From positions 62,001 through 126,000 of IMG/VR virus record IMGVR_UViG_3300033388_007730: a stretch of DNA of 64,000 nt. One strand, given 5' to 3'. This document shows, one piece after another, positions 2,810 through 41,494 of this stretch. Both the position numbers and the translations under genes were made by a program. Numbering within the stretch: the stretch's first letter is position 1; each line of letters opens with the position of its first letter. The notes under the pieces were generated by a model. It saw only the letters and a list, made by a program, of their open reading frames with translations. It was not told the origin of the DNA and made no database searches.

Positions 2810-3171
2810 GATATGTTAGAAAAGAACATATTGTAACCACTATATGTAATGAAGATGTGACAGAGGATGATATTATAAGTAGTGTTTTGGCTAGTCTAAA
2901 AAACAATATGATAGAATTTTCTTTAAACACCAAAAAATATTTTCCAAGTTGTTTTGATTATAAATATACTCATTATAATAAAGTTAAAGTTGAAAGTGTG
3001 GGAGAGAATGTCGTTGATTTTATAATTTTTGACAAGTTTTCTACTACTCATTTAAGAGGCATTCATTTCTCTGACATAGTAGAGATTAGTGCCATTACGA
3101 CAGTAGATAAAATTTTAAAAACCAAACCTAATGCTACCAGGTGGGATTTTTTAGATATAAGAGAGGAATAA
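2806..3171 (+). CDS. hypothetical protein with tag variant
   Basis: ends ATRWDFLDIREE. Confidence 0.6.
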   Translation: MRYVRKEHIVTTICNEDVTEDDIISSVLASLKNNMIEFSLNTKKYFPSCFDYKYTHYNKVKVESVGENVVDFIIFDKFSTTHLRGIHFSDIVEISAITTVDKILKTKPNATRWDFLDIREE

Positions 3172-3173
3172 TT

Positions 3174-3374
3174 ATGGCATATTTAATTAGAGCAATAGGC
3201 GAAAAAATTGGCACTACAGAATATGAGAAAATTGATGATGCAAAAAGTTTTGCAACAACTCATATTGAGAATTACAAAGAGGGATTTGAGATAGTGGATA
3301 AAGGGAGTGGAAGAATTGAGTACACGGATAAAAGAGAAGAAGTGAGCAGAACAGATTTAATAGATTGGGATTAA
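3174..3374 (+). CDS. hypothetical protein with tag variant
   Basis: start moved to ATG 3174 (SD GAGG); ends VSRTDLIDWD. Confidence 0.55.
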   Translation: MAYLIRAIGEKIGTTEYEKIDDAKSFATTHIENYKEGFEIVDKGSGRIEYTDKREEVSRTDLIDWD

Positions 3375-3375
3375 T

Positions 3376-3957
3376 ATGACAGAATGTTATTATATAGGAA
3401 GTAGAAAGTGCAGAGTTCGTACAATAACCCCTAAACAATTGGCAGAAGCAACAGAAGCAGGGATTACAAGAAGAGATTATCATCGTAGTGTCGGCTCTAC
3501 AGGACATTATTATGATCCGGAACAAGGAGAATATAAAAATGAAATATATGGATGTTTGGGAGAGATAGTATTTAGAGATATCGTAAAAAAAAATGGTCTT
3601 GGATCTGTTTCTCATTTTTATCCGTTTTATTCAATTGGCAGGGAAGAGATAGCAAAAAAGGCAAATCATGATGCGGAGATATGTTCAAAGACAATAGAAG
3701 TAAAAACAGTTATTCCTCCAAGCGGGCATAAAAAAAGAATATTAGTTAAATTAAGAGAGTATAAAAAAGGAATTAATTTTTATGTTGTTGTTAAATTTAT
3801 TAATGATAATGAATATGTCTTTGCTGGATTTTGTACTGATGAAGAGTTGAAAATAAATACACCACGTAGTTTTGGGCAGGGAGGAAAATGTTATTGGAGA
3901 TTGTTGGAAGATTTGCATCACATGAAAAAAGATTGGTGGGAATTTGAGGAGAAGTAA
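3376..3957 (+). CDS. putative PD-(D/E)XK restriction-endonuclease-fold protein
   Basis: GCLGE...HDAEI...IEVKT pattern. Confidence 0.45.
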   Translation: MTECYYIGSRKCRVRTITPKQLAEATEAGITRRDYHRSVGSTGHYYDPEQGEYKNEIYGCLGEIVFRDIVKKNGLGSVSHFYPFYSIGREEIAKKANHDAEICSKTIEVKTVIPPSGHKKRILVKLREYKKGINFYVVVKFINDNEYVFAGFCTDEELKINTPRSFGQGGKCYWRLLEDLHHMKKDWWEFEEK

Positions 3958-3958
3958 A

Positions 3959-4255
3959 ATGGAAGAACACAGTCCATATTTTAATTATATTACATGGAAA
4001 CAAATGGCAGAGATTTCAACTTCTGTGACAGAGAATGGTGTAGTAGATGACATGTTATTTGCATTAAAGTTGCTCTCTATAATATATTGTATCGAAGAAG
4101 ATATATTAAAGGATATGAAGATGAGTGACATTATGAGATTGAAAAATGCTGTTGAGAAAGGAACACCAGAGGATGTTAAAAGAGAGAAAAAATGGGTGAT
4201 AAGTTATATTAAAGATAAATATGAAGTTGATAGATTTGAGTTGATGGACTTGTAA
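3959..4255 (+). CDS. hypothetical protein with C-terminal tag
   Basis: SD GAGGAG before ATG 3959; ends VDRFELMDL. Confidence 0.6.
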   Translation: MEEHSPYFNYITWKQMAEISTSVTENGVVDDMLFALKLLSIIYCIEEDILKDMKMSDIMRLKNAVEKGTPEDVKREKKWVISYIKDKYEVDRFELMDL

Positions 4256-4317
4256 GATGGATATTGATATTAGTTTTTTGTCGAAAGAACAATTAAGAAA
4301 ATAAATTAATTCCTATT

Positions 4318-4500
4318 ATGGGTAAGCTAAAAGCTAAAGAGTTTCAGTATGAAGAATTATTTTCGGAAGTTAAAGAGATAAAAGAGAAAAACAAGGAAAA
4401 TGAATCTAAAATTGAAGAATTAGAAAAAAGCAATAAAGAGTTAGAAGAAAGCAATAAGAAGTTGAATAAATATACCAAATTTGAGGCGATGGACATTTGA
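4318..4500 (+). CDS. small coiled-coil protein with C-terminal tag
   Basis: heptad-like ELEKSNKELEESNK; ends YTKFEAMDI. Confidence 0.55.
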   Translation: MGKLKAKEFQYEELFSEVKEIKEKNKENESKIEELEKSNKELEESNKKLNKYTKFEAMDI

Positions 4501-4516
4501 AAAGACTTGAAGCCAC

Positions 4517-4611
4517 ATTCTACTATATTAATTCTACTATATTATAAATATACTATATTAAAAAATATTGTCACTGGCATTGTCACAAATGTCATCCTTG
4601 TGGAGAAGGAT
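4517..4611. repeat. intergenic direct repeats and hairpin upstream of dnaE
   Basis: ATTCTACTATATTA at 4517 and 4531, variant at 4547; TGTCA at 4569, 4581, 4590; ATCCTT-6 nt-AAGGAT inverted repeat at 4594-4611. Confidence 0.7.
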
Positions 4612-4665
4612 TGGAAAAGTTGTTCAAAATGGTAGATAAAATGAAAAAAAAGGAATCAAAAAAAG

Positions 4666-6066
4666 ATGAAATTCAGTAATAAAGAGTTTGTGCATTGGCA
4701 TGTTCATAGCGAAAATTCGAAATTTGACGGATTGGCGAAATTAGATGAGTTAGTAATGAGAGCAAGAGAGATGGGGTTCCCAGCTCTTGCACTTACTGAC
4801 CATGGAAATATTCAGGGCTGGATTCAGTTCTTGAAATTAGCGAGAGCTACTAAAGATAAAAAAGGTAATGATATTCCTTATGCTCCTATTAAACCTATTC
4901 TTGGTTGCGAGTTTTATCTTTCCCGAAAAATGGATATAGGTCAATATGATGAAAAGATGAAGAAGAAGGGTGAGCCTGTAAGACAACAACCGGATAAGAG
5001 GAAAGGAAATAGACATTTAAATCTTTACGCAATGAACTTTAAGGGATATAAGAATATTTGCAGATTATCTCAAGCTTCATTCACAAGAGGATTTTACTCA
5101 GATCCAAGAATTGATATAACTACTTTAGCGGAGCATAGTGAAGGTGTTATGATAGGTTCTGCTTGCTTATCTAGTCTGATTAATGTTAATCTTATGTATG
5201 GAAGATACAATGAAGCTAAACAAGTTTGCACTACTTTAAAAGATATATTTGGAGAGAATTTTTTCCTAGAAATAATGTATCATGGAATTCCTGAAGAAAG
5301 AGAAATATTACCTTACATATTTCAACTATCAAAAGAATTAGAGATACCAGTAGTCGCTACTAATGATTCTCATTATATACATAAGGAACAAGGAAGATCA
5401 CAAGAGTTATTAATGTGCATGTCTCAGCAGAGGTGTATAAAAGATTCTAAAAGATTAAACTTTAGACATATGGAATTTTATTTGAAAAGTGCTGATGAGA
5501 TGTACAAATTATTTAAGGGTCATCCAGAAGCTCTTGTAAATTCAAGAGTATTGGCAGAGAGAATTAATACAAAAGATATTGAAGAGAATTTGTTTGGAGG
5601 TATGAGACTTCCTATTTTTGATATCCCATCAGAGCATAAAGATCCATTTGAGTATATGGAAAAATTAGCCTGGGAAGGAATGAAAAAGATTGGATGGGAT
5701 AAGAGTCAACCACACATAGACGCATTGAAAATGGAGATAAATGATGTGTTAGTGGCAAGAGATAATAATAATTATGATTTTGCTACATATTTCTTAATAG
5801 TAAAAGATTATATTGAGAATGCAAGAGATAATGGTGTGTTAGTAGGTTGCGGAAGAGGAAGTGGATATGCCAGTGTGTTGTTAAGGTGTCTTGGAATTAC
5901 TTATGGAGCTGATCCTTTAGAGTATGGACTTTTATGGGAAAGATTTTTAGGGTTCTCAGATTCTAGGTTCATTAAAGAAAATGATTTTGGCTTTGAAACG
6001 GATATAATTCAACAAACATTAGATATGGATGTTGGTGGTGATGTAGAGGAAGATTTTAATGGATGA
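4666..6066 (+). CDS. dnaE: DNA polymerase III alpha, piece 1 (PHP domain plus start of palm)
   Basis: HWHVHSENSKFDG, ALALTDHGN, GCEFY, VVATNDSHY, GCGRGSG, LGITYGADPLEYGLLWERFL. Confidence 0.9.
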   Translation: MKFSNKEFVHWHVHSENSKFDGLAKLDELVMRAREMGFPALALTDHGNIQGWIQFLKLARATKDKKGNDIPYAPIKPILGCEFYLSRKMDIGQYDEKMKKKGEPVRQQPDKRKGNRHLNLYAMNFKGYKNICRLSQASFTRGFYSDPRIDITTLAEHSEGVMIGSACLSSLINVNLMYGRYNEAKQVCTTLKDIFGENFFLEIMYHGIPEEREILPYIFQLSKELEIPVVATNDSHYIHKEQGRSQELLMCMSQQRCIKDSKRLNFRHMEFYLKSADEMYKLFKGHPEALVNSRVLAERINTKDIEENLFGGMRLPIFDIPSEHKDPFEYMEKLAWEGMKKIGWDKSQPHIDALKMEINDVLVARDNNNYDFATYFLIVKDYIENARDNGVLVGCGRGSGYASVLLRCLGITYGADPLEYGLLWERFLGFSDSRFIKENDFGFETDIIQQTLDMDVGGDVEEDFNG

Positions 6067-6244
6067 ACAGAAAGAATTACTATGTAGATTTTGGGAAAAG
6101 AAATTGGGTCTAGAGTATATGTAATATCTTAGAGATCGAAAAAATGATTACCTTATGAGTATTTTAGAAGAAGATTAGAATAAATTTGATATTATAGACA
6201 TAGATAAAGAAGAAGAAAAAGAAGATGATATATGTTCCACTTAG
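6059..6244 (+). pseudogene. small tagged ORF interrupted by two in-frame stops
   Basis: SD GAGGA, ATG 6059; TAA 6122 and TAG 6176 in frame; readthrough gives ...NKFDIIDIDKEEE. Confidence 0.4.
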
Positions 6245-6404
6245 TGATGAAGAAAAAGGACAATTAAAACAGTACTGGCTGACAATGCGTCCAAAAGAAT
6301 ATGTTGATGTTCTATTTGATGATCTTCCTGTCCCTCATTATTGTTGTGATTATATGGTAAATATTACAGAGACACAAAAAAGATTTGAGTTAATGGATAT
6401 ATGA
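6225..6404 (+). CDS. 59-aa hypothetical protein with C-terminal tag (absent from ORF track)
   Basis: hand translation MIYVPLSDEEKG...TETQKRFELMDI*. Confidence 0.65.
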   Translation: MIYVPLSDEEKGQLKQYWLTMRPKEYVDVLFDDLPVPHYCCDYMVNITETQKRFELMDI

Positions 6405-6422
6405 GTATAAGAATAAAGAAAC

Positions 6423-6662
6423 TTGATGATAGAGGTAATTTATTTTAAATATGATAATGGATACGAGGTCTGGAGAGATTTTGATGAGGAAAATAATTGT
6501 ATTCATTGGAAAGATTTTAGTGGAGTAGAACATTGGTGGGAGCATAGAGTAGAAACTTCAGTGATGTGTATAAAAATTACAAAAGAAGAATTTGAGGAAA
6601 TAGAAGCAAAGAAAAAAGGAAAGAAAAATATTTATACAAGATTTGAGATAATGGATATGTGA
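6423..6662 (+). CDS. short aromatic-repeat protein with C-terminal tag; true start probably 6401 with a frameshift near 6440
   Basis: repeat units YFKYDNGYEVWRDF / IHWKDFSGVEHWWEH; ends YTRFEIMDM; upstream frame MSIRIKKLDDRGNL fits the repeat. Confidence 0.55.
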   Translation: MMIEVIYFKYDNGYEVWRDFDEENNCIHWKDFSGVEHWWEHRVETSVMCIKITKEEFEEIEAKKKGKKNIYTRFEIMDM

Positions 6663-6673
6663 AAGAAGATTAA

Positions 6674-7723
6674 ATGCCTGATTTAGAAATAATTAGAAAA
6701 GAAATTATAGAGGAAATAAGCAATAGATTGAAAGGTGATCCTAGATTGCCAAAAGCTGTTTCTAAAGCAAATGAAGAGTTAGATGTTATGAGCAATACTA
6801 ACGGATTAGAACAGAAAAACAATTTAGAAACATTTTATTCTATATGGAAGAAGAATCAAGGGAAAGTTGGACATAAAAATGAGATAAACAGTTGGACAGC
6901 TTTCTTTTTAGGAATGACAGAAACTAAACCTGAAAAAGGTAGTGAGTTCGTTCCCATAAGAAGGTGTTTCGCAAGAGCTGGGTTCCCAGACATAGATACA
7001 GATTTTGATGATGAGAAGAGAGATAGTGTTTATGACTACATCATTGCAAAATATGGAAGAGAAAATGTTGGTAATATTGGTACTCATGGAAAGCTGAAAT
7101 TTAAGAGCTGTGTGACAAGAGTTGTTAAGGCATTAGATGTGGCAGGATCTTTCCTTAAAAGTCCAGAGGCTTATATTTCTGATAATGCTCAAAAGGTTAC
7201 AGAGATATTAGAGCCATTTCCTAAAAAGGGATTAATGAAAGTTACTGATGAAGATGGCAATGAGCATTTGATAAAGAATTTTAAAGATGCTTATAGATAT
7301 TGTCCTGATTTTGCTAAGTCTATAGACAAACATCCAGAGATAAAAATACACGCCGAACATATAGAAGGAACATTTGCAAATTTTGGTTGTTTAGCAGCTA
7401 ATACTCCGATTTTAACTGAAAAAGGTTGGATAAGAATAGATCAATTAACTACTAAATATAAAATAGCTTATGTTGATAAAGATGAAAAAATTAAATATAC
7501 TGATGAGTTCAAGAAGTTTAAAACAGGTATAAAAAAGACATACCGAATGAGATTATCTAGCGGTTCATTCATTGATGTGACAGATGAACATTTAATTTTT
7601 ACAGATAAGGGATGTGTTAAGTTTGAAGAAATTAGAAAAAATCAAAAAAAATATAAAATATATGAAGTTAAAGAATATATCAAAGAACGACGAGCCAAGC
7701 TTTGTGATATATTAGATAATTAA
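6674..7723 (+). CDS. dnaE: DNA polymerase III alpha, piece 2, fused to N-terminal half of a split intein
   Basis: FPDIDTDFDD catalytic motif, YIIAKYGRENV, IEGTFANFG then intein block A CLAANTPILT. Confidence 0.88.
   Translation: MPDLEIIRKEIIEEISNRLKGDPRLPKAVSKANEELDVMSNTNGLEQKNNLETFYSIWKKNQGKVGHKNEINSWTAFFLGMTETKPEKGSEFVPIRRCFARAGFPDIDTDFDDEKRDSVYDYIIAKYGRENVGNIGTHGKLKFKSCVTRVVKALDVAGSFLKSPEAYISDNAQKVTEILEPFPKKGLMKVTDEDGNEHLIKNFKDAYRYCPDFAKSIDKHPEIKIHAEHIEGTFANFGCLAANTPILTEKGWIRIDQLTTKYKIAYVDKDEKIKYTDEFKKFKTGIKKTYRMRLSSGSFIDVTDEHLIFTDKGCVKFEEIRKNQKKYKIYEVKEYIKERRAKLCDILDN
7388..7723 (+). mobile_element. split intein N-fragment (IntN, 111 aa)
   Basis: starts Cys CLAANTPILTEKG; block B IDVTDEHLIFT; stop follows with no endonuclease. 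Confidence 0.85.
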
Positions 7724-7751
7724 TTACCTAATCATAAGGTTATGGAGGGAA

Positions 7752-7895
7752 ATGATGAATAATTGTGAGTTATTTGAAATAGTATCAATAGAAGAATTAG
7801 ATTTTGAAGATGTTTATGATATCTCTATGAATGAGGGTCCAGAATTTTTTCAAAATGAGCATAATTATGTGGCTAGCAATATAGTTGTTCATAAT
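7752..7895 (+). mobile_element. split intein C-fragment (IntC, about 48 aa)
   Basis: block F VYDISM...HNYVASNI and block G VVHN followed by +1 Cys. Confidence 0.85.
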
Positions 7896-9152
7896 TGTCA
7901 CGCTGCTGGAGTTGTGGTATCGGATGTCCCACTTGATGAGATTGCTCCGTTGAGAACAGCAAGGAAAGGTATGTTAGCAACTCAGTTCCCTAATGAAGAT
8001 TTAGAGACTTTGGGTTTGATAAAATTTGATATATTAGCTATCGCTACTTTGTCTGTTATAAAAAATACTGTGGAAATGATTAGAAAGAATTATGATATAA
8101 CAATAGATATAGAGAATTTACCGTTAGATGATCAAATGACTTTTGAGATGTATAGAACCGGAAATCTTGGAGGTGTCTTCCAATGTGAGAATTGGGGTAT
8201 GCAAAGGACAATGAGAGATATTAAGGTTGACAGTTTTGGAGATATAGTTGCTGGTTTAGCATTATACAGACCTGGACCTATGGATTCTATCCCTAAATAT
8301 TGTGCTAGAAAAAATGGAGAAGAGGACGTTAGTTATTTTCATCCTTCAATTGAACCTCACGTTAAGAAGTATCTTGAAAAAACTTATGGAATTTTATGTT
8401 ATCAAGAACAGGTTATGCAGATTTGTAATTCATTAGCTGGATTTACTATTACTGATGGTTATATTATGATTAAAGCTATTGGTAAGAAAAAAGATTATTT
8501 GATGAATAAATTTAAAGAACAATTCATAGGTGGATGTGTTAAGAATGGTGTAGATGAGTATGTCGCTATAGAATACTGGACTAAATTTATAACTCCATTT
8601 GCAAGTTATGGGTTTAATTTGGCGCACAGTGCTTGTTACGGTTATAATTCTTATACTACTGCTTATTTAAAAGCACATTATCCTGAAGAGTTTATGTGTT
8701 CATTCTTAAATGTTATAACTCATGGATCTGGAGATAAATATGATAAGATAGAAGCATTTGAGAGAGAATTTAAGAGGAAAATGAATGTTAAGTTTCTTCC
8801 AAGAGATATTAATCGGTCGAAGGTGGAGTATATCGTTGAAAAGCCTGGAGATAGATGCGGAGTAACAAAGATAGAGATGAGACCTAGTTTAATATGCAAA
8901 GGAGTTGGATTTAAAGCTGCTGAGGACATAGAGCAAAATCAACCATTCAAAGATTTGGAAGAGTTTGTTGAGAAGATAAATACTTCTACTGTAGATACTA
9001 GAGTTATTGAAGCATTGGCAATAGGCGGATATTGGGGCAAGAAATATGTCAAGGATCCACTTAGTTTAGTCAAAAAGTTCACTATGATACGCGATGATAG
9101 AAAAAAATCTTTTCAAAAAGGATATGAACCAGGAGCAGATATTTTTGGATAA
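7752..9152 (+). CDS. dnaE: split intein C-fragment fused to DNA polymerase III alpha piece 3
   Basis: own SD GGAGG at 7744; ...NIVVHN|CHAAGVVVSD, KFDIL, GVFQCE, ALYRPGPMD, FASYGFNLAHSACY, YLKAHYP; no OB-fold or tau-binding tail. Confidence 0.9.
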   Translation: MMNNCELFEIVSIEELDFEDVYDISMNEGPEFFQNEHNYVASNIVVHNCHAAGVVVSDVPLDEIAPLRTARKGMLATQFPNEDLETLGLIKFDILAIATLSVIKNTVEMIRKNYDITIDIENLPLDDQMTFEMYRTGNLGGVFQCENWGMQRTMRDIKVDSFGDIVAGLALYRPGPMDSIPKYCARKNGEEDVSYFHPSIEPHVKKYLEKTYGILCYQEQVMQICNSLAGFTITDGYIMIKAIGKKKDYLMNKFKEQFIGGCVKNGVDEYVAIEYWTKFITPFASYGFNLAHSACYGYNSYTTAYLKAHYPEEFMCSFLNVITHGSGDKYDKIEAFEREFKRKMNVKFLPRDINRSKVEYIVEKPGDRCGVTKIEMRPSLICKGVGFKAAEDIEQNQPFKDLEEFVEKINTSTVDTRVIEALAIGGYWGKKYVKDPLSLVKKFTMIRDDRKKSFQKGYEPGADIFG

Positions 9153-9158
9153 TTTTCT

Positions 9159-9186
9159 TTCAAAGTGATTAATAATATCATATAAT
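9159..9186 (+). promoter_or_regulatory. sigma70-like promoter
   Basis: TTCAAA-16 nt (starting GTGA)-TATAAT. Confidence 0.45.
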
Positions 9187-9212
9187 GTCGATATATTGAT
9201 GGAGAAATAGTT

Positions 9213-9386
9213 GTGATTGATGTAAGATGCCCCCAGTGTAATAGCAATGATTTGGAGATCATTGATACCCAAGGTCATATCAAAGATGCCTATATTTCAG
9301 AGAAAACTGGATGTTTGAAATGTGGTCATGTATTTGATGTAGAAGCAAAAATATTTTATAAAAAAATAGGAGAAAAAAATGGCTAA
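9213..9386 (+). CDS. 57-aa zinc-ribbon protein (absent from ORF track)
   Basis: GTG start after SD GGAG; CPQCNSNDLEIIDT...CLKCGHVF. Confidence 0.6.
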   Translation: MIDVRCPQCNSNDLEIIDTQGHIKDAYISEKTGCLKCGHVFDVEAKIFYKKIGEKNG

Positions 9387-9663
9387 ATCTATTGTGAAAA
9401 AGACTATTAGAAGAAAAATCCAAACTGCAAAATTCGAGGCTCTTGATATTGAATTAGAAGTGGAAGAGCAGATTATATGGGATACAGAAGAAGAAAGAAT
9501 AGCGGCTACTGCTAAACTTTCTAAGAGATTGTTGGATGATTTTACTAAGACCTACAATGAAGTAGTCGAGAGAACTGGTGTTGATAGATGTATTGGTGTT
9601 GTTACTGTTAAGAAAGACAACAATAAATCTAATGGATCTGAAGTTGATTTTGATTTTAGTTAA
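9379..9663 (+). CDS. hypothetical protein
   Basis: SD AGGAG; acidic-aromatic end EVDFDFS. Confidence 0.65.
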   Translation: MAKSIVKKTIRRKIQTAKFEALDIELEVEEQIIWDTEEERIAATAKLSKRLLDDFTKTYNEVVERTGVDRCIGVVTVKKDNNKSNGSEVDFDFS

Positions 9664-9674
9664 GAGAGTGAAAT

Positions 9675-10733
9675 ATGACAGATAGAAGTGATGCTTTAGT
9701 AGCTTTTGAAGAAATGTTCAATGGCGTGTCTGAGGGTAGAGGTAAAGACAACACTGATCAGGCAGAAGAGTATGGTGATAGTTCTTTATCGGAAGAATCA
9801 TTTAACGATGTAGCAAAAAAAGTTGTTAATGATTTAAATGAGTGTGAGAGTGGGCATTCTTTGACAGATGTGAATAAGGTTCTTGGAGATATGGAGGAAG
9901 AAGAAATTCTTAAAGAAGCTCCTAGAGTAGAAATTGTAGAAGTTGTAAAAGATGATTCTGATGATGATTTTGATGCTTTGCCAGAGGAACCTAAAGATCT
10001 TCCAGAGCCTAGTGCAAGATTTGAGGAGATTGTAGAAAAGGCTACAAAAGAATTGGCTGAAGTAACAGAAGTTGTAGAGCATAAGGGTGGTTGTGTCGTT
10101 ATTTCGAATGAAAAAATTAAATGGAATTTAGATAGTCCGACAGCTCTATATAATAATTTTTACAGGAAGAAAAAAGAGTTGGTAGAAATTTATACTGGTA
10201 AACAACTTGATTTTTATGCTCTTAATATAGAACTTCGCAATGCATCAGTAGATATATCTTATGTTGTTTTTGATCAGGAAGTAGTTCTTCAACAGATGCA
10301 GGAAATTCAACAGCATAGAGAAAGAATAAAGAACATATCTTTAGAATGTAATATTCAGTATTTTGTGTGGAAAAGATGGATAGAAAAAGATATGATGAAG
10401 GGTTATCTTGCTATGGTAGAATATATTAAACCAGCTATTAAACAAGAAGGACTCGTTTTAGAACATATGAGAGATTTAGAATATTATTATGCACAGTTAG
10501 AAGCTCTTCATAATAATTGTCAAAAAGTAGAGAAGACTTTAGAAGCAGCATATGATACTTTGAGTAGAAGAGTTTCTATTTGTATGGAACTAAAAACTGG
10601 TATCAGGTATGCCAGGAGCGATAGTAGAGAAACTCCTTCAAAACAAGAGATTGTGAGAGAAGATGATTTTGATGATGTTCCAATGGGAGAAACTGCTACA
10701 AAAAAGAAAAGTGGTTTTATTGGATGGGCTTAA
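9675..10733 (+). CDS. hypothetical protein, acidic N-terminus plus helical/coiled-coil domain
   Basis: 352-aa ORF in the replication module immediately before SSB. Confidence 0.6.
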   Translation: MTDRSDALVAFEEMFNGVSEGRGKDNTDQAEEYGDSSLSEESFNDVAKKVVNDLNECESGHSLTDVNKVLGDMEEEEILKEAPRVEIVEVVKDDSDDDFDALPEEPKDLPEPSARFEEIVEKATKELAEVTEVVEHKGGCVVISNEKIKWNLDSPTALYNNFYRKKKELVEIYTGKQLDFYALNIELRNASVDISYVVFDQEVVLQQMQEIQQHRERIKNISLECNIQYFVWKRWIEKDMMKGYLAMVEYIKPAIKQEGLVLEHMRDLEYYYAQLEALHNNCQKVEKTLEAAYDTLSRRVSICMELKTGIRYARSDSRETPSKQEIVREDDFDDVPMGETATKKKSGFIGWA

Positions 10734-10819: not shown

Positions 10820-11497
10820 ATGAGTGGATTTGTACAGTGGAATGAAGTACCAAGTGGTGGAGAAAGAACGAATTTTTTGGCTTTGAAGAGTGGTAATACT
10901 TATAAAATAAGACCTCTTCTTCAACCCCTTAATTTTCACAAGTATTTCCACAAAGTAGATGGCAAAATGAGAACTGCTGTCGTGTCGGAAGAAGTAGTAG
11001 CTCAAATGGCAGCTAAATATCCTGACTTAGGCAAACCAGCTAATCGTTATGCTATGTATGTTTTAGATAGAAATGACAATAACCAAATTAAAGTTATGGA
11101 ATTTCCTATCTCTGTTTACAAGCAATTTAGTAATAGTTTCCAGGCGACTAATAATGAGCCAGGAAGCAAGGTGAATGGTAGCGACTGGATGATTAAGATT
11201 TCAGGAACTGGTTTCAATACTACTTATGAAACAACATTTATCGCCAACACTCCTTTGACGGAAGAAGAAATTAATGTTGTGAAAACTGAGCTTGCTGGAG
11301 ACTCAGAAAAGTTAGCAACAATATTCCCTTTTAATGAGGTTCCTCAGGCGGAGAAAAGATTGTTTAATCCAGATGAGAAGGGTAATGGTGGTCAGGCTAG
11401 TTCGCCTGCTGTTAGTGCGCCTGCTGTTAGTTCGCCTGCTGTTAGCGGGATTGTTCCTTCAACTGGTTCAGATGAGGATTTTAATCCAGATTGGTAA
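10820..11497 (+). CDS. phage gp32-like single-stranded DNA-binding protein
   Basis: FLALKSGNTYKIRPL, YVLDRND..IKVMEF, DWMIKISGTGFNTTY; flexible linker and acidic tail DEDFNPDW; adjacent to recA. Confidence 0.7.
   Translation: MSGFVQWNEVPSGGERTNFLALKSGNTYKIRPLLQPLNFHKYFHKVDGKMRTAVVSEEVVAQMAAKYPDLGKPANRYAMYVLDRNDNNQIKVMEFPISVYKQFSNSFQATNNEPGSKVNGSDWMIKISGTGFNTTYETTFIANTPLTEEEINVVKTELAGDSEKLATIFPFNEVPQAEKRLFNPDEKGNGGQASSPAVSAPAVSSPAVSGIVPSTGSDEDFNPDW
11401..11445 (+). repeat. 15-bp tandem repeat x3 in the SSB linker
   Basis: (T/G)CGCCTGCTGTTAG units encoding SPAVS/APAVS. Confidence 0.75.
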
Positions 11498-16948: not shown

Positions 16949-16983
16949 CATTTCTGTTAATAAGTTAGATGAGGTGGGAATTT

Positions 16984-19962
16984 ATGAAGACGTTGCAATC
17001 AAATGAGTATCAAAAAGAGGCTATTTCGCATAAAGATGGTCCGTGTCTAGTAACATCATGTCCTGGTTCAGGAAAAACATTCACTTTAGTAGAGAGGATT
17101 GTTGCTCTTATTAAAAGTGGAGTAGAACCAAAAAATCTTCTTTGTATCACATTTACAAATAAAGCTGCTAATGAAATGAGAGAAAGGATTTGCGATAGAC
17201 TTGGAATTAAGAAGCCAGGATTCTTTATTGGAACTTTCCACTCTTTATGCGCTAAGATGTTGAGAAAGATTGGTCCAGGTAGAGGATATATTGCTAATTT
17301 TACAATCTTAGCAGATAGAGAACAAATGGATATGGTGATGCAAGTTTCCAGGCATTTGGGATATGATATAAAAATAGGAGATGCTAGAAGAATAGCTCAT
17401 GCTGTTAACTATTATAGAGATCAGATGGAAGATTTTATCTGGGTAGAAGAAAGATTAAAAACACTACCTATGATTGAAATAGGAAGAACTTATTTAGAGA
17501 GATGTAAAAATAATTCTATGATAGATTTTAGTGGGCTTATCTCAGAAGCTATTAGAATTATTGAAGAGAACCAAGATATTAGAGAAAAAATACAAGATAC
17601 TTTTAAGTATATTTTAGTTGATGAGACTCAAGACACTAATAAATCACAATTCCATTTGGTTAATTTGTTAGGAGCAAAATGGAAAAATATTATGTTGATA
17701 GGCGATATCGATCAATGTCTTGTTGATGGAACAAAAATAGAGACTAGAGATGGTATAAAAAATATAGAAGATGTAATAGAAGGAGAAGAAGTTAGAGTTG
17801 CTACTGGAGGTGATAAAACATTTTTTACTAAGGTGAATAAAAAATATAGAAAAAAAATTAAAAATGATAAAAAAATTGTTAAAATTAAAACACGATTAGG
17901 GAAAGAAATAATAGCAACAAATGAGCATGTATTTTTTGCTGATTTTGTTGTTCCTTCTGAATTAAATAAGTATTTTGTTTATCTAATGTATAAAAAAGAT
18001 ATAGGATATAGAATAGGATTGACTAGCACCTGTGTTAAACGTGAGGGGAAAAGTAAATTTGGATTTTTAGGAAGGTTAAGAGGGGAAAAAGCGGATAGAA
18101 TTTGGATAATAGAAACTTGTAAGACATATCGGGAAGCAGCTTATTATGAACAATATTATTCATCAGAATATGGTTTGCCCACATGGACTTTTGTAGATAG
18201 AGCTTATCTCAGTAAAAATGCGTATACTAAAGAAGATATAACAAAATTATTTGGATCTGTTAACACTACTAAAAAGGCTAAAAAATTGATGGAAGATAAA
18301 AACATTGAATTTCAATACTTTTATCATTTTCCATCTGCTTCTAATAAAAAAATGAGAGATAATTTTACAATTACTATGTGTGGAGATTCTAGATATGCTT
18401 CTTTACATAGATATTGTTATTCTTTTTCGGGGAATAATAAAAAAGAAAAATTAATAGAAGCTGGATTAAATGTTAGAAAATCTAAAAAGAAGTATTGGAG
18501 GATAGAAAGCGCTAATCAAAATTTGAAGAATGTCTATGACATTTATGATAGAATACAAAGTGTAATTCCAGATATAAATATAGTAGAAAAAGCTAATTTT
18601 GCTGGTCATTCTTTGCTTTTGATGCCATCATCACATCTTAAGATGGGTATTAATATTGCTATTTTTCATGATGGGAATATTGTATTGGACGAAGTTGTAG
18701 AAGTGAAAAATGATGTATTAGAAAATGGGTGGGTTAATGATCTAGATATAAATAGGTATCATAATTATATAGCAAATGGTATAGTAAGTCATAACTCAAT
18801 TTATGGTTGGAGAGGAGCTAGGTATCAGAATATTCAGGAATTTATGGATATGTACCCTGAGTGTAATGTAATATCATTATCTAAGAATTACAGATCTACG
18901 CCAGAAATAATTGCTGTTGCTGATAAACTCATTAAGAGGAATAGCAGTCATGTTAAAATAAAATTTGAGACAGATAACAAAAGTGGGCAACCAGTAAAAT
19001 GTTATAGTTTTGGAGATCAAAATAAAGAAGCTGAATGGATTGGTAAAATGGTTAAGAAACTCATGGAAGATGGTGGCTGGGATCCAGAAGATATGGCTGT
19101 TCTATATAGAGTTAATAAGATGTCTGAACCTGTTGAGCAATCTTTGGCGACAGCAGGTATTCCATACGAGGTTGTAGGATCATGGAATTTTTATGATAGA
19201 AAAGAAGCGAGAGATTGTATTGCTATGTTAAAGCTTATAGCCAATAATAAGGATGCTATATCTTTTCATAGAGTTATCAGTATGATGAAAGGCATGGGGA
19301 ATATAACAATAGGAAAAATAGAGATGAAAGCTGCTAATAAGAACATACCTTTGTTGGATGCTGCATTGCTTATAAAAGCTGAGTCTAATTCTGTTTCTAT
19401 AAAGAAAGCATGTCAAGAAATTTATGATAAATATAATCAGAAGTGGGATTTTTCTAATCCTGCTAAGTGTTTATCTATGGTAGTTGATGGATTAGGATAT
19501 CCTGATTATCTTCATAAGAAATATGGAGGAGATGCAGCCGAAAGATTAGAAAATGTAGAACAGATTGTAGATGCTTGTGGAGAGTTCGCAGGTCATGAAA
19601 ATGGTCTTAATCAGTACTTGCAACAGATAGCATTAGTTACTTCTGCTGACAAAGAAGATGAGGGTGGAAAAGTTTCTTTAATGAGTTTACATGCTGCTAA
19701 AGGATTAGAGTTTCCTATTGTATTTATGATAGGTGTTGAGAACGGAATTCTGCCGCATCAGCAAGCTGTGGTTGATGATCCTGCTAGTGGATTGGAAGAA
19801 GAGAGAAGATTATGTTATGTGGGGATGACAAGAGCAAAGAAAGTTTTGTATGTTACTTGGTGTAGAAATAGAAAAAGATTTGGCAAGTTTGGGGTAATGT
19901 CATATAAGGGCACTAAACCAAGTGAATTCTTAAAAGAGTGTGGATTGATGAGGGACGAATAA
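16984..19962 (+). CDS. uvrD: UvrD/PcrA SF1 helicase containing an intein
   Basis: CPGSGKT, ITFTNKAANEM, LVDETQDTN, GDIDQ|intein|SIYGWRGA, NYRS, HAAKGLEF, EERRLCYVGMTRA. Confidence 0.92.
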   Translation: MKTLQSNEYQKEAISHKDGPCLVTSCPGSGKTFTLVERIVALIKSGVEPKNLLCITFTNKAANEMRERICDRLGIKKPGFFIGTFHSLCAKMLRKIGPGRGYIANFTILADREQMDMVMQVSRHLGYDIKIGDARRIAHAVNYYRDQMEDFIWVEERLKTLPMIEIGRTYLERCKNNSMIDFSGLISEAIRIIEENQDIREKIQDTFKYILVDETQDTNKSQFHLVNLLGAKWKNIMLIGDIDQCLVDGTKIETRDGIKNIEDVIEGEEVRVATGGDKTFFTKVNKKYRKKIKNDKKIVKIKTRLGKEIIATNEHVFFADFVVPSELNKYFVYLMYKKDIGYRIGLTSTCVKREGKSKFGFLGRLRGEKADRIWIIETCKTYREAAYYEQYYSSEYGLPTWTFVDRAYLSKNAYTKEDITKLFGSVNTTKKAKKLMEDKNIEFQYFYHFPSASNKKMRDNFTITMCGDSRYASLHRYCYSFSGNNKKEKLIEAGLNVRKSKKKYWRIESANQNLKNVYDIYDRIQSVIPDINIVEKANFAGHSLLLMPSSHLKMGINIAIFHDGNIVLDEVVEVKNDVLENGWVNDLDINRYHNYIANGIVSHNSIYGWRGARYQNIQEFMDMYPECNVISLSKNYRSTPEIIAVADKLIKRNSSHVKIKFETDNKSGQPVKCYSFGDQNKEAEWIGKMVKKLMEDGGWDPEDMAVLYRVNKMSEPVEQSLATAGIPYEVVGSWNFYDRKEARDCIAMLKLIANNKDAISFHRVISMMKGMGNITIGKIEMKAANKNIPLLDAALLIKAESNSVSIKKACQEIYDKYNQKWDFSNPAKCLSMVVDGLGYPDYLHKKYGGDAAERLENVEQIVDACGEFAGHENGLNQYLQQIALVTSADKEDEGGKVSLMSLHAAKGLEFPIVFMIGVENGILPHQQAVVDDPASGLEEERRLCYVGMTRAKKVLYVTWCRNRKRFGKFGVMSYKGTKPSEFLKECGLMRDE
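17716..18795 (+). mobile_element. intein (360 aa) in helicase motif III
   Basis: CLVDGTKI...ATNEHVFF...DLDINRYHNYIANGIVSHN followed by +1 Ser. Confidence 0.9.
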
Positions 19963-21587: not shown

Positions 21588-21758
21588 ATGGGAGATACCG
21601 TTCCAATAACTATTAGAATAAGAAAAGAAGTTTTAGAAAAAATTAAAAAGATTGCTAGAGAAAAATCTTTTAATGAAGACAAGGATTATAGTTATAGCGA
21701 TATAGTAAGAGAGTGTTTAGATAAGGTTATTAAGTATGAAAAGAATAGAAATATCTAA
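21588..21758 (+). CDS. ribbon-helix-helix DNA-binding protein (absent from ORF track)
   Basis: MGDTVPITIRIRKEVLEKIKKIAREK...SYSDIVRECLDK; SD GAGG. Confidence 0.65.
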   Translation: MGDTVPITIRIRKEVLEKIKKIAREKSFNEDKDYSYSDIVRECLDKVIKYEKNRNI

Positions 21759-22749
21759 ATCATCATTAGAGCAGTTATACATTATTGATGGAAAAACTAG
21801 AAAAGAAGTTGCTAAGATATATGGATGCTCAGTTGACACAATAAAAGATAGATTATTAAGATTTAATTTAAAGAAAAATATAAAATCTAAAAATCTTTTA
21901 AGAGAAATAATTGATGGATATGTAAAAGAAGGTAAGACTATAAAAGAAATGGCTTTAAGTTATAGATGCTCAATATTTGTAATGAAAAGAAAATTAAAAG
22001 AATATGGTATAAGATTACAGAAGAAATGCGATATTGATGACAAATATTTTTCAAAATGGTCGTCTAATCTGTCTTATTTAGTCGGTGTTATTTTTACAGA
22101 TGGATGTGTTAGGGATAATAGGAATGAGTTAACGCTCGTCTCTAAAGATGAAGAGTTAATAATTTTTTTCAAGAATGAATTAAAGACTAATTATAAGACT
22201 ATTCTTGTAAAATCTAAAGTTAATAATAACATATATAATTTTGTTTATGTTTATTCTAAACATATTATTAAAGATTTGTTAAAGATTGGAATAGTTCCAA
22301 GAAAGAGTAGAATATTATCTTTATCAAAAATTCCTTCTGAGTATATGGATATTTATTTTTGGGATATTATGAGAGGAATCGTAGACGGAGATGGATATAT
22401 ATATCAGCCAAAGAATAGGTCTATTAGATTTGGGATATGCTCTGGTAGCAGAATATTTTTAGAAGAAATATTAGATAATTTAGTTTGTAAGATAAAATGT
22501 CCTAGATATCAAATAGTAAAAGTTAAAAATAAAGAGTCATATTATTTAAATATAAATGGGGAATATGCTTATCTATGTTTAAAAAAAATGTATGACAATA
22601 ATAAATTTTCCATAAAAAGAAAAAGATGTATAGCCTTAGAATCTATGAGGGCGTTTGAAAATAAGAAGAATTGTATTTCTTGTGGAAGTGAAATGAAATT
22701 TTTTAATTTTGCTAGAAAATATTGCGATGATTGTAGAGGTAGATATTAA
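21736..22749 (+). mobile_element. free-standing LAGLIDADG homing endonuclease with N-terminal HTH repeats
   Basis: YLVGVIFTDGCV and IMRGIVDGDGYI; HTH RKEVAKIYGCSVDTI. Confidence 0.8.
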
Positions 22750-23020
22750 GACTAGTGTAATAAATATTAGATCTGATAAGTGTAGAGAAAATTTTGTTTA
22801 CATTGGAAGAGGAAGTAAATGGGGGAATCCTTTCTTTATTGGTAAGGATGGAACTAGGGAAGAAGTAATAGAGAAGTACAGAGACTGGATAAAAACTCAA
22901 CCAGAACTTCTCAATTCTCTACATGAGTTAAAAAATAAGAGGTTGGGATGCTATTGTTATCCCATGCACTGCCACGGTGATGTGTTGATAGAGCTATTAG
23001 AGGAAGAAGATAATGGCTAG
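22727..23020 (+). CDS. DUF4326 family protein
   Basis: VYIGRGSKWGNPF...LGCYCYPMHCHGDVL. Confidence 0.85.
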   Translation: MIVEVDIKTSVINIRSDKCRENFVYIGRGSKWGNPFFIGKDGTREEVIEKYRDWIKTQPELLNSLHELKNKRLGCYCYPMHCHGDVLIELLEEEDNG

Positions 23021-23420
23021 TTTATATGATTATATCCCAAAATACCCTATGTCAATATCTTTTGGAGGGAAAGAGATAAATGTTAGTGGCATTCAAAAAT
23101 TTGAAATAGAAGTGGATAGATGTTTTGCTCACTACTTCGTTTGGGTTGATACTGTTCAAATAGCTCCTCTATTACCATCTGGGAAGAAAAGCACTGTAGT
23201 TTTAACTCCAACCGAGTTAAGTTATGGTAGTCTTTTTAATATATCCAATATAACTTTAGTATGTAAAATTCTGAGTTTAGCATATCAGTCTAGGAGACAT
23301 AGATATATAGTTGAATTAAAATGCATCTTAAATCCAAAATTTTTAACCAAGTTTAAATACATAGAACCAGGAAAAGAAAAAAAAGAAGAAATAGATAAAT
23401 TTGATTTGATGGACTTATGA
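23013..23420 (+). CDS. hypothetical protein with C-terminal tag
   Basis: ends KEKKEEIDKFDLMDL. Confidence 0.6.
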   Translation: MASLYDYIPKYPMSISFGGKEINVSGIQKFEIEVDRCFAHYFVWVDTVQIAPLLPSGKKSTVVLTPTELSYGSLFNISNITLVCKILSLAYQSRRHRYIVELKCILNPKFLTKFKYIEPGKEKKEEIDKFDLMDL

Positions 23421-28926: not shown

Positions 28927-29472
28927 ATGGTTAAAAAGAGAAAATTAGTTTTTTATGGTGATGGACAAAAGAAGAAGAAAAAAGATAAACCTGTTGTAGT
29001 GGTAGGAACAGGTGGAAGCGAAAATATTTGGTATAGTTTAAAATTGCAGCAAGAAATATCTTTTCTCATAATGAATAATGATTTAAGATGTTCTATCATG
29101 CAGTTTGAGTATGTGATTGATTGGAGAACTCTTTGTTCTCAGGGAAGATTTTCTGAAGAATTATTAGATGTATTTTCAGATAAGGTTCATTGGGACATTG
29201 TTTCTTCTCGTAAAAAATTATCAGAAAAGATCATGAATAAACATGCTGATAAATTGAATTGGATGGCTGTCAGTCGTAATCAGAATTTGGGGAAAGAATT
29301 TATTTTTGAACATTTTAATGAGTTAGATATAGATACATTAATTAAGAGAAAACTTATAACGGTTGATGATTTAGATAAAAGAGAAGTAGAATTAAAGGAA
29401 AAGAAGATAGCAGAAAAAAGAGATGAAGAAGATATCGTCAACCGTTTCAATATCATGGAGATGGATGAATGA
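28927..29472 (+). CDS. tryptophan-repeat protein with C-terminal tag
   Basis: repeats IDW..L / VHW..VS / LNW..VS followed by SE-type motifs; ends VNRFNIMEMDE. Confidence 0.6.
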   Translation: MVKKRKLVFYGDGQKKKKKDKPVVVVGTGGSENIWYSLKLQQEISFLIMNNDLRCSIMQFEYVIDWRTLCSQGRFSEELLDVFSDKVHWDIVSSRKKLSEKIMNKHADKLNWMAVSRNQNLGKEFIFEHFNELDIDTLIKRKLITVDDLDKREVELKEKKIAEKRDEEDIVNRFNIMEMDE

Positions 29473-29699
29473 AGTGTGTAGATTGCAAAATGACTTTAAT
29501 GGGTAGCATGCCAGGTTCTTTTTACGCAAATGGAAGATGTTGTAAATGTAATAAAATATATGAAACAAAAATAGCTTTGAAGGAAGAAGCAGACAAACTG
29601 ATAGAAGAAGCAGATAAACTGATAGAAGAAATTAATAAAAAAGAGACAGCAGAAAAAGAAGAAAAAATGGGATGTTTTGATATGATAGATTTTGATTAG
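29469..29699 (+). CDS. small Zn-finger protein with tag variant
   Basis: CVDC...CCKC; EEADKLI twice; ends GCFDMIDFD. Confidence 0.55.
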   Translation: MKCVDCKMTLMGSMPGSFYANGRCCKCNKIYETKIALKEEADKLIEEADKLIEEINKKETAEKEEKMGCFDMIDFD

Positions 29700-40598: not shown

Positions 40599-40605
40599 GT
40601 AAAAG

Positions 40606-41493: not shown

Positions 41494-41494
41494 G

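Follow-up and report, generated by a model that had tools for sequence, protein, structure and literature searches.

Three open reading frames (ORFs) on the plus strand of the window (the whole 64,000-nucleotide stretch of viral DNA analysed here), at positions 4666-6066, 6674-7723 and 7752-9152, were confirmed and found to jointly encode one C-family (DnaE-type) polymerase of a huge uncultured phage. The product of the first ORF (piece 1) consists of a PHP exonuclease domain followed by the palm N-subdomain with the GRGS motif; piece 2 comprises an N-terminal domain of about 98 residues, the strand with the DxD pair, the thumb and an N-terminal intein fragment; and piece 3 starts with the C-terminal intein fragment, followed by the third catalytic Asp (KFDIL), the fingers and the HhH domain. 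The hallmarks of a DnaE-type polymerase, namely, PHP, a palm with the GS motif, DxD pair and third Asp, fingers and HhH, are all represented, except that the catalytic core does not reside on one polypeptide: the first piece contributes GRGS, the second PDIDTDF and the third KFDIL. The ORFs, Pfam domains and motif positions all agree with the original prediction, which described a DnaE in three pieces with these catalytic motifs on three genes. Searches of the 219 kb record (about 44% of the genome) with the Pfam models of PolA, PolB and the beta clamp produced no match, and the PolB model PF00136 in particular had zero matches across the record, although a further polymerase may be encoded in the rest of the genome. 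In genome annotation pipelines, the pieces come out as 'PHP domain protein' or 'hypothetical protein', so that the phage polymerase is missed.

Piece 1 (466 aa; 4666..6066, plus strand, as are all features below) aligns with residues 3-408 of Mycobacterium tuberculosis DnaE1 (E 9e-59). Its PHP domain (4693..5283, residues 10-206; Pfam PF02811, E 2.8e-40) contains the positions H, H, D, H, E, H, C, D and H, which are invariant among 40 family members, and these metal-ligand positions pair with identical residues in M. tuberculosis DnaE1; the domain is likely a proofreading exonuclease. The genuine, NTP-binding palm N-subdomain (5650..5958) was identified by Pfam, with positions 1-97 of the PF07733 profile matching residues 329-431; by the motifs GRGS (residues 396-399, nucleotides 5851-5862), LGITYGADP (409-417) and WERFL (424-428, nucleotides 5935-5949); and by a profile match to the palm N-subdomain of actinophage DnaE (99% probability, E 3.5e-18). 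GRGS is invariant in 40 piece 1 homologues. Past WERFL, piece 1 has 38 residues (429-466; 5959..6063), 11 of them acidic; alignment delineates here the segment FIKENDFGF (NDFGF at 5980-5994) and an acidic stretch that runs to the terminal DVEEDFNG. The RFLGF...DFG core is invariant or nearly so in a 35-sequence alignment (A3). Among the 120 piece 1 homologues listed, about one quarter stop at DFGF or within a few residues of it, and most of the others add an acidic linker and a tail of the type ..EDDLGGVDRY; the ..GGVDRY ending typical of most homologues is absent from the window's piece 1. The conserved DFGF element after WERFL may correspond to a duplicated, dead DxD strand, in which case the overlap between the pieces would be reciprocal.

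The first break falls after WERFL...DFGF and before PDIDTDF. The spacer (6067..6673) contains two small ORFs, 6225-6404 and 6423-6662, which end in RFELMDI and RFEIMDM, respectively, and match no Pfam or PHROG family; in relatives, the break is occupied by 0 to 6 cargo genes. No stop codon reassignment would allow reading past the end of piece 1 because the frame downstream of its stop holds TGA, TAG, TAG, TGA and TAA, and an Rfam search of positions 4300-9600 matched no family, intron or other. Recoding, an intron and an intein were each rejected as the means of joining piece 1 to piece 2. The motifs accord with the earlier claim that the first break lacks an intein and that a split intein is located at the second one. 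The first break is common to the best 120 piece 1 homologues, all but two of which are 433-494 aa long, and is present in 74 of the 78 clusters of the piece 2 N-terminal domain; the same architecture was observed in independent assemblies from ENA, JGI, NCBI and Logan.

Piece 2 (349 aa; 6674..7723) begins with a palm N-subdomain copy that lacks GS (residues 1-98; 6674..6967) and was identified by alignment, AlphaFold2 modeling and hhalign. Positions 6-213 of PF07733 match residues 10-220, and the recognizable motifs are EELDVM (34-39), GHKNEINSW (66-74) and FLGMTETKP (78-86). In place of GS, residues 68-69 are KN, which is found in all piece 2 homologues, and the copy lacks not only Gly-Ser but also the preceding Arg. 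The AlphaFold2 model of the domain (pLDDT 83; residues 1-102) was compared with 48,161 PDB chains and showed Z >= 5 for C-family polymerases only, with the structural alignments beginning at residue 315 of the M. tuberculosis enzyme and residue 286 of the E. coli one. A direct hhalign comparison of the piece 2 N-terminus with the piece 1 C-terminus, which had been proposed as a check, was not significant (E 0.2, equaled by 105 of 300 column shuffles). The profile of the domain did match the GS-bearing palm segment of actinophage-type DnaE (E 1.5e-4; 0 of 400 shuffles scored as high). Because the structure search and the profile comparison through actinophage DnaE agree, the domain is a real, if very divergent, homologue of the palm N-subdomain. 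The original view of it as a decayed duplicate holds as far as the palm homology is concerned, whereas decay does not fit a conserved domain in which E35, N69, S73, R96, R97 and R101 are invariant among 36 sequences.

The strand carrying the catalytic DxD pair, PDIDTDF (residues 105-111; 6986..7006), was located by alignment; its P105, D106, D108, D110 and F111 do not vary within the family, and from this strand on, the fold of a relative aligns with E. coli Pol III alpha, starting at about residue 402. The 111-aa N-terminal split-intein fragment (7388..7720) begins at C239 of piece 2 (CLAANTPILT, Cys1), contains block B (TDEHLIFT, 303-310) and matches the Spl DnaX mini-intein (7cfv; E 7e-9). 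The C-terminal fragment (7752-7895) ends in VVHN at residues 45-48 of piece 3, followed by CHAAGVVV. Relatives lacking this intein run uninterrupted across FANFG[FY]HA(A/S)G. The halves are separated by a 28-base spacer (7724..7751) with GGAGGG upstream of the ATG and no homing endonuclease gene; in relatives, the gap holds one or two genes, such as a LAGLIDADG gene in L006 and those for zinc-finger proteins of 286 and 290 aa in L004 and L007, respectively. All the residues expected of a fractured-gene intein are present, namely, Cys1, TxxH in block B, and the terminal HN followed by Cys, and from these residues we infer that piece 2 is trans-spliced to piece 3.

Piece 3 (466 aa; 7752..9152) continues, from Cys49 on, as the C-extein (7896-9149), as delineated by Pfam and alignment: PF07733 positions 212-260 are followed by the fingers (PF17657, E 6e-52) and HHH_6 (PF14579, E 3e-9). 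KFDIL (residues 91-95; 8022..8036) aligns with LLKMDFL of Thermus aquaticus Pol III alpha. Residues 511-888 of E. coli Pol III alpha align with the C-extein, after which 38 residues remain; because piece 3 stops there, the OB fold and the C-terminal domain are absent, as originally noted, and no Pfam OB-fold or tau-binding C-terminal domain was detected in the downstream ORFs (9213-10733). Judging by its position relative to the E. coli alignment, the C-terminal GADIFG (9132..9149) is a possible clamp-binding motif: it falls near E. coli residues 920-925, the position of the internal beta-binding motif QADMF, and relatives end in SVDLFE, SVDIFN or TGNIFE.

A complex was predicted from proteins of relatives that are about 60% identical to those of the window, P0152 (piece 1) and P0043:1-478 (piece 2 and beyond). 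The ipSAE was 0.92, compared to 0.02 for the best of 3 controls; in calibration, 58 of 80 solved complexes attained the former mark, as did 2 of 110 mismatched pairs. Three runs shared at least 94% of the contacts, with pLDDT of at least 89 for the partner, although the predictor may have arranged the pieces by reproducing the solved structures of single-chain Pol III alpha. On the piece 1 side, the predicted interface includes the GRGS loop (390-401), PHP and the whole tail (426-444), every residue of which is involved; on the piece 2 side, it includes the N-terminal domain (39-98) and the DxD strand (100-113). The helix after DxD is predicted to contact the palm helix of piece 1 (residues 120 and 121 of piece 2 with 383 of piece 1; expected error 0.7 A). 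When a relative's subunit B (pieces 2 and 3 joined) was folded alone, the N-terminal domain was predicted confidently, the DxD strand had pLDDT below 50, as did the linker residues 93-112, and the domain was not confidently docked on the palm. Pieces 1 and 2 are naturally fused into a single chain in P0322, P0331, P0379 and P0320, fusions that occupy at least three positions in the family tree; by the Rosetta-stone argument, their existence indicates that the two pieces act together.

The analysis shows how the genes are organized and conserved, that the extra domain is a palm homologue and that fused forms occur in nature; splicing, non-covalent assembly and the choice of the palm copy that serves catalysis are inferred. 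The best reading, to which we assign a probability of about 0.7, is that the three translation products of this locus form a heterodimeric polymerase whose active site is composite. The split intein would link Gly238 of piece 2 to Cys49 of piece 3, yielding a subunit B of about 656 residues that would consist of the pseudo palm N-subdomain, DxD strand, thumb, third Asp, fingers, HhH and the clamp-motif-like tail. Subunit A would be piece 1 itself, with no covalent join, contributing the PHP proofreading nuclease and the live palm N-subdomain with GRGS. Under the structural model, the first break is probably bridged by protein-protein contacts alone: the subunits would pair via a very large interface, with GS of the active site coming from A and the three Asp from B. 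The GS-less palm copy at the start of B and, in A, the terminal DFGF strand plus tail would serve as a clasp, an extra binding surface, both elements of which would be relics of an overlapping duplication around the first break. More tentatively, and with a probability that we rate as low, the chains might be kept together by reciprocal exchange between tandem-duplicated half-sites. The live DxD strand of piece 2 would then complete the live GS subdomain of piece 1, and the dead DFGF strand of piece 1 would complete the dead KN subdomain of piece 2, so that the polymerase nucleotidyl-transferase core would be present twice, once active and once dead.

The existence of actinophage gp56-type proteins, PHP-less DnaE with a complete palm of their own, counts against the heterodimer. 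By analogy, subunit B might keep some activity by itself, and, going further, it could be self-sufficient, using its own N-terminal palm with KN for GS, so that piece 1 would be an accessory proofreader (as epsilon is to E. coli alpha) whose palm only mediates docking. The palm-N fold and strong conservation of the piece 2 N-terminal domain are in line with this alternative, and so is the Krampusvirus-type layout, which pairs a PHP-only protein with a polymerase that has a complete palm. We nevertheless consider it unlikely: GRGS of piece 1 is invariant in the whole family, although docking alone would not require the motif; the piece 2 copy lacks Gly-Ser and the preceding Arg; and the DxD strand, unplaced when B is folded alone, is followed by the helix predicted to contact piece 1 with such a small expected error.

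An assembly mechanism that is conditional, with the dead palm-N blocking the live site in free B until it is displaced by piece 1, would make DNA synthesis dependent on the proofreader. It would account for two homologous modules for one site, both within the predicted interface, and for the pseudo-copy's own invariant N69, R96 and R97, which suggest a specific role. However, it appears improbable given that the monomer model leaves the N-terminal domain without confident docking on the palm and that the fused single-chain forms would require intramolecular displacement. We give hardly any credence to an assembly error at the break or a decaying pseudogene. The tail of the window's piece 1 is indeed degenerate compared to those of relatives, but the catalytic and PHP residues are all intact, and conservation on each side of the break extends to relatives with as little as 23-36% identity. 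Moreover, the search for the same break in related phages recovered it from dozens of independent metagenomic contigs, with differing cargo, which makes both misassembly and decay unlikely.

Compared with known systems, the locus is a variant of fractured DnaE with split inteins and of the two-gene phage DnaE. In the passages of Dassa et al. 2009 (PMC2677866) that deal with DnaE and polymerase III, 'fractured' DnaE genes with split inteins are described from marine metagenomes; the phage-like dnaE is interrupted by a split intein whose halves are adjacent on one strand, at integration points unlike the cyanobacterial one. The window likewise has a split intein with adjacent halves on one strand, and its relatives share with the loci in those passages the free-standing endonuclease between the halves; in contrast, the window has a 28-base gap with no endonuclease gene, and all breaks in the passages concerned are intein-mediated, whereas the first break in the window is intein-free. 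Cyanobacterial split DnaE, a replicative enzyme, likewise relies on naturally split inteins to rejoin its pieces (Ssp and Npu DnaE inteins; PMC2677866). There, the insertion site is different, the two genes occupy separate loci, and the two pieces, compared to three here, are spliced into a single-chain enzyme.

Iyer et al. 2021 (PMC7824862) reported a minimal split Pol III alpha in group 2.2 jumbo phages, in which the Pol beta-like catalytic module is predicted to be divided non-covalently between an NTP-binding N-terminal protein and a C-terminal one for Mg2+ and template binding. The first break in the window is at the same fold position (NTP-binding / Mg-binding). That minimal version, however, has neither PHP nor any other Pol III domain, its genes lie far apart and a family B polymerase accompanies it (PMC7824862), whereas the window encodes PHP, fingers and HhH in adjacent genes, with no PolB found in the 219 kb record, and the duplicated dead subdomain at the break is a feature of the window. 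In the Krampusvirus Microbacterium phage JDawG (OR475287.1), the adjacent gp55 and gp56 are both annotated as DnaE-like; gp55 consists of PHP only, and gp56 matches positions 15-260 of PF07733 with a live GS (VGPARGSAAAS) and aligns with the window's piece 2 from residue 9 on (E 2e-12). Here too, the genes are adjacent, PHP comes first and the second gene opens with a palm N-subdomain. The Krampusvirus break, however, lies between PHP and palm, so that gp56 keeps the live GS, whereas the window retains the live palm-N next to PHP and leaves its polymerase subunit with the dead copy only.

Replicative polymerases are normally single catalytic chains, whereas huge phages of a widespread clade appear to replicate with an active site shared by two polypeptides and a spliced third piece. 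The locus provides a model of gene fission in which a gene is split in the middle of a catalytic domain by duplication of the segment around the break, followed by complementary loss of GS from one copy and of DxD from the other; fused and split forms both still exist, which makes their comparison possible. The family also adds new split inteins, with at least three insertion sites within one protein family, and offers a naturally evolved split site with docking modules for the engineering of split polymerases. If the reciprocal exchange is true, the arrangement would amount to 'overlapping fragment complementation' of natural origin, showing that an active site can be split via duplication and complementary loss, and DNA synthesis in these phages would strictly depend on association with the proofreading PHP subunit.

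The dnaE locus is contained in a 219 kb IMG/VR virus record with an estimated completeness of 44% (CheckV), and the phage is therefore huge. The GC content is about 31%, and almost every long ORF lies on the + strand. On this strand, DnaE is encoded in three ORFs, denoted piece 1 (4666-6066, 466 aa), piece 2 (6674-7723, 349 aa) and piece 3 (7752-9152, 466 aa). Pfam searches identified the PHP domain and positions 1-97 of PF07733, the palm model of Pol III alpha, in piece 1, positions 6-213 of the same model in piece 2, and positions 212-260 together with the fingers domain and HHH_6 in piece 3. Every motif named in the original prediction was found in its place in the three pieces. SSB, RecA, Toprim primase and an intein-bearing UvrD helicase are encoded close downstream of dnaE; PolA, PolB and the beta clamp were not detected in the 219 kb of the record. 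Megablast with the dnaE locus found no match among cultured phage genomes, scanning IMG/VR for peptide patterns of piece 2 confirmed no relative, and promoter and terminator sites in 4300-9500 were no more numerous than in shuffled sequences.

Pieces 1 and 2 are separated by a 607-base spacer (the first break) with two small ORFs inside, and piece 2 has its own start. Stop-codon recoding at this break is ruled out because all three types of stop codon follow in frame past the piece 1 stop (TGA, TAG, TAG, TGA, TAA), and an Rfam scan of the dnaE region matched no family, introns included. We found 67 relatives of piece 2, and all those aligned share a common start point, 88-112 residues ahead of the FPDID motif. 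Among the best 120 relatives of piece 1, encoded on contigs of up to 472 kb, all but two are 433-494 aa long. The search for the same break in related phages, suggested along with the original prediction, recovered it in independent assemblies, and the order piece 1, piece 2, rest of the gene is retained in five relatives with long contigs. The break contains no genes in relatives L006, where the two genes overlap by 17 bases, and L018, one gene in L017, two in L007, as in the window, and six in L004. Given its conservation across independent assemblies, the first break is an ancient and conserved boundary between genes at which cargo accumulates, and mobile genes seem to insert there. The first of the six cargo genes in the intein-free break of L004 (4262-5293) encodes an HNH homing endonuclease (PHROG 559, E 2e-23) that is free-standing; the other five genes are small. 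A single conserved mobile element was rejected as the source of the cargo: the cargo genes vary among the relatives, and L004 has two endonuclease-like proteins that show no relationship to one another.

Piece 2 opens with a domain (residues 1-98, hereafter N-domain) that was originally predicted to be a decayed duplicate of the end of piece 1. Direct comparison of the two regions gave no significant similarity. BLASTP produced one weak hit (E 1.8), pairing FLGFSDS..EEDFN with FLGMTET..DTDFD, and the proposed HHalign check, N-domain profile (A2) versus piece 1 C-terminal profile (A3), gave E 0.2 and a score of 12.85, which was equalled by 105 of 300 column shuffles. The N-domain alone had no match in Pfam or, by tblastn at E <= 10, in cultured phages, and an hmmsearch of PDB sequences with its profile did not find DnaE. 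Residues 1-102 of piece 2 were modeled with AlphaFold2 from the family alignment without templates (mean pLDDT 83). In an exhaustive structural comparison of this model, just five of 48,161 PDB chains reached Z >= 5, all of them C-family polymerases, which also account for seven of the eight top matches. The alignments span about 95 of the 102 residues and begin at residue 315 of Mycobacterium tuberculosis DnaE1, 286 of the Escherichia coli protein and 826 of PolC, the same region that aligns to piece 1 residues ~330-430. Furthermore, piece 2 residues 9-238 align in one HSP (E 2e-12) to gp56 of the cultured Krampusvirus actinophage JDawG (Microbacterium phage; L009, OR475287.1, two-gene DnaE at 39846-43194), with the N-domain falling on the genuine GS-bearing segment. 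A profile of this segment, built from 31 split and unsplit actinophage-type DnaE proteins (A6), matched the piece 1 C-terminus with E 3.5e-18 and the N-domain profile with E 1.5e-4 (score 28.2; shuffle null 12.0 +/- 2.6, maximum 24.4, with 0 of 400 shuffles reaching the observed score). In the A6 register, K68-N69 occupy the Gly-Ser position, and the invariant Ser73 as well as Thr82 and Pro86, each conserved in at least 90% of the sequences, coincide with Ser, Thr and Pro residues that are invariant in the canonical segment. The structural and profile matches identify the N-domain as a true homolog of the palm N-subdomain that lacks the nucleotide-binding motif. Six of its residues are invariant across 36 sequences of 23-60% identity, and hence it is conserved rather than decaying: the duplicate stands, but its decay does not.

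In all relatives of piece 1, WERFL is followed by GF..(R/K)FIKESDFGF. Across the 35 sequences of alignment A3, the R-F-L-G-F core and the later Asp are invariant, and the next Phe-Gly is present in at least 90%. By position and pattern, the short motif S-D-F-G-F resembles the P-D-I-D-x-D-F strand and may be a version of it in which the catalytic Asp residues are replaced. Of the 120 listed relatives of piece 1, about one in four end at DFGF or only a few residues away from it and lack the tail, and most of the remaining ones extend further, through an acidic linker, into a conserved tail of the form ..R[ED][LV]EDDLGGVDRY. Compared with homologs P0070-P0187, the piece 1 tail in the window (6040-6063) is degenerate, ending in ..DVEEDFNG, with the final residues of ..EDDLGGVDRY absent.

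Two results, a predicted complex and natural fusions, indicate that pieces 1 and 2 function together. The complex was predicted not for the proteins of the window itself but for piece 1 of a relative (P0152) and the intein-free polymerase subunit encoded on the same contig (P0043, residues 1-478). The ipSAE was 0.92, compared with 0.02 for the best of three controls; in the calibration of the tool, 58 of 80 solved complexes reached that mark, as did 2 of 110 mismatched pairs. The runs shared at least 94% of contacts, with partner pLDDT of at least 89. The predicted interface comprises 322 contacts and involves, on the P0152 side, the PHP domain, the loop with GRGS and the tail over its full length, and, on the P0043 side, the N-domain, the DxD strand and the helix after it. 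In the model of P0043 alone, the N-domain is confident, the DxD strand has pLDDT < 50, and the remainder superposes on E. coli alpha 402-755. As the predictor may have packed the pair by recalling solved single-chain structures of Pol III alpha, the prediction shows that the pieces are compatible with the canonical fold and is no proof of binding. When the N-domain profile was searched against 1.84 billion representative proteins, 78 clusters were found, and four of them are single-chain fusions (P0322 with 1117 aa, P0331, P0379 and P0320), with piece 1 continuing past DFG(L/F) and across a short linker to the N-domain and then the DxD strand. P0322 occupies the syntenic position by itself, and a separate piece 1 gene is absent. 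In the tree of the polymerase core, rooted with actinophage DnaE, fused forms appear at three or more places amid split ones, and a single fused clade was rejected (p-AU 0.00017). Fusion and fission have thus been repeated, which makes sense only if both gene products function as a single enzyme.

The second break, between pieces 2 and 3, is by sequence a split intein. The N-intein (piece 2 residues 239-349) starts with Cys1, contains TDEHLIFT and matches the Spl DnaX mini-intein (E 7e-9), and the C-intein (piece 3 residues 1-48) ends in VVHN and is followed by Cys; 28 bases separate the halves in the window, and a LAGLIDADG gene or zinc-finger proteins do so in relatives. Intein-free relatives have an uninterrupted FANFG[FY]HA(A/S)G at this site. 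In other relatives, the split intein is located after YGFNK or after YGFN(R/A)AH, and further relatives have a contiguous intein or none and a polymerase subunit of 640-680 aa. An intein lies within the PHP-bearing piece in one relative and inside the GRG|SG of the nucleotide-binding motif in another. The polymerase family thus has five or more intein sites, counting that before HAAG, with some inteins contiguous and some split (L006 8812-9951; L007 3012-5621; P0320; P0052; P0064). The genome itself is intein-rich. The 997-aa UvrD-type helicase (16969-19962) contains an Intein_splicing match at residues 263-609, and the full record has four more intein-like matches, at 148157-148690, 181427-181624, 204040-204288 and 196001-196408, the last of which has internal stops and may be another split or broken intein. 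A 337-aa ORF at 21736-22749, with weak matches to LAGLIDADG_3 and HTH_28 and similarity to the endonuclease between the intein halves of L006, may encode a homing endonuclease of the free-standing kind.

All nine metal-ligand positions of the PHP domain are invariant in the family and pair with identical residues of M. tuberculosis DnaE1, which proofreads with its own PHP domain (PMC5636811). The C-extein of piece 3 aligns with residues 511-888 of E. coli alpha and extends for another 38 residues to its end, GADIFG. By position, GADIFG (9132-9149) corresponds to QADMF, the internal clamp-binding motif of E. coli alpha. The polymerases of relatives end in SVDLFE, SVDIFN or TGNIFE, no OB fold or tau-binding domain was found after the HhH and tail of piece 3, and the polymerase seems to be truncated directly past this putative clamp-binding motif. 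A C-terminal R-[FW]-[DE]-[LIM]-[MLI]-D-[LIMF], followed by up to three more, mostly acidic residues, is common to about 14 + strand ORFs, most of them small. These ORFs are located in the window at 897-1703, 1728-2243, 3141-3374, 3944-4255, 4318-4500, 6225-6404 and 6423-6662 (the two ORFs in the first dnaE break), 23013-23420 and 29469-29699, and in the full record at 175442-175756, 192720-193070, 193067-193639 and 201146-201328. Small dnaE-adjacent ORFs of relatives bear such tails as well (RWELLDI, RWGLMDIEEKEE, FFDYIDLED). This common tail looks like a docking peptide through which all these proteins would bind a single hub, and it is reminiscent of the tails by which proteins of T4 and RB69 bind the clamp. 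Acidic-aromatic C-termini also occur elsewhere in the replication module, on a 94-aa ORF after dnaE (9379-9663), which ends in ..VDFDFS (..GDFDFLG in its L004 counterpart), and on the gp32-like SSB (PHROG 1192, 10820-11497), which ends in ..DEDFNPDW.

The best reading of the locus, to which we assign a probability of about 0.7, is a heterodimeric replicative polymerase with a composite active site, held by a clasp. Subunit A, the product of piece 1, would provide proofreading through its PHP domain along with the live GS subdomain, and subunit B, a product of ~75 kDa spliced from pieces 2 and 3, would provide the three Asp, the thumb, the fingers and HhH, so that the active site would be shared by the two subunits. 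The clasp would consist of the dead palm-N copy of B and the DFGF strand and tail of A. It is unlikely that B is self-sufficient, with A an accessory exonuclease only, given that GRGS is invariant in A and lost in B. An autoinhibition switch appears somewhat less probable still, and an assembly artefact or a pseudogene is effectively excluded for this recurrent break.

Parts of the heterodimeric arrangement have precedents. The 'fractured' DnaE with a split intein is already known (Dassa et al. 2009, PMC2677866), and the second break matches its layout. The minimal Pol III alpha of other jumbo phages is predicted to be split non-covalently (Iyer 2021, PMC7824862), at the same point of the fold as the first break. 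In Krampusvirus actinophages, DnaE is annotated as two adjacent genes, with the break between PHP and palm: in JDawG, gp55 is PHP only, and gp56 contains the complete palm, fingers and HhH. This is a second, independent fission of a phage DnaE, at a different boundary. Close metagenomic relatives encode a fused protein of ~1040-1110 aa. A full-text literature search for a non-intein split of a PHP-bearing phage DnaE returned no description, Dassa 2009 and Iyer 2021 being the only relevant papers in the collection searched. What is new here is a break inside the palm of a full PHP-bearing DnaE, its flanking by a conserved reciprocal duplicate, and the combination of the palm break with a split intein, which distributes the polymerase over three genes in a large clade of huge phages.
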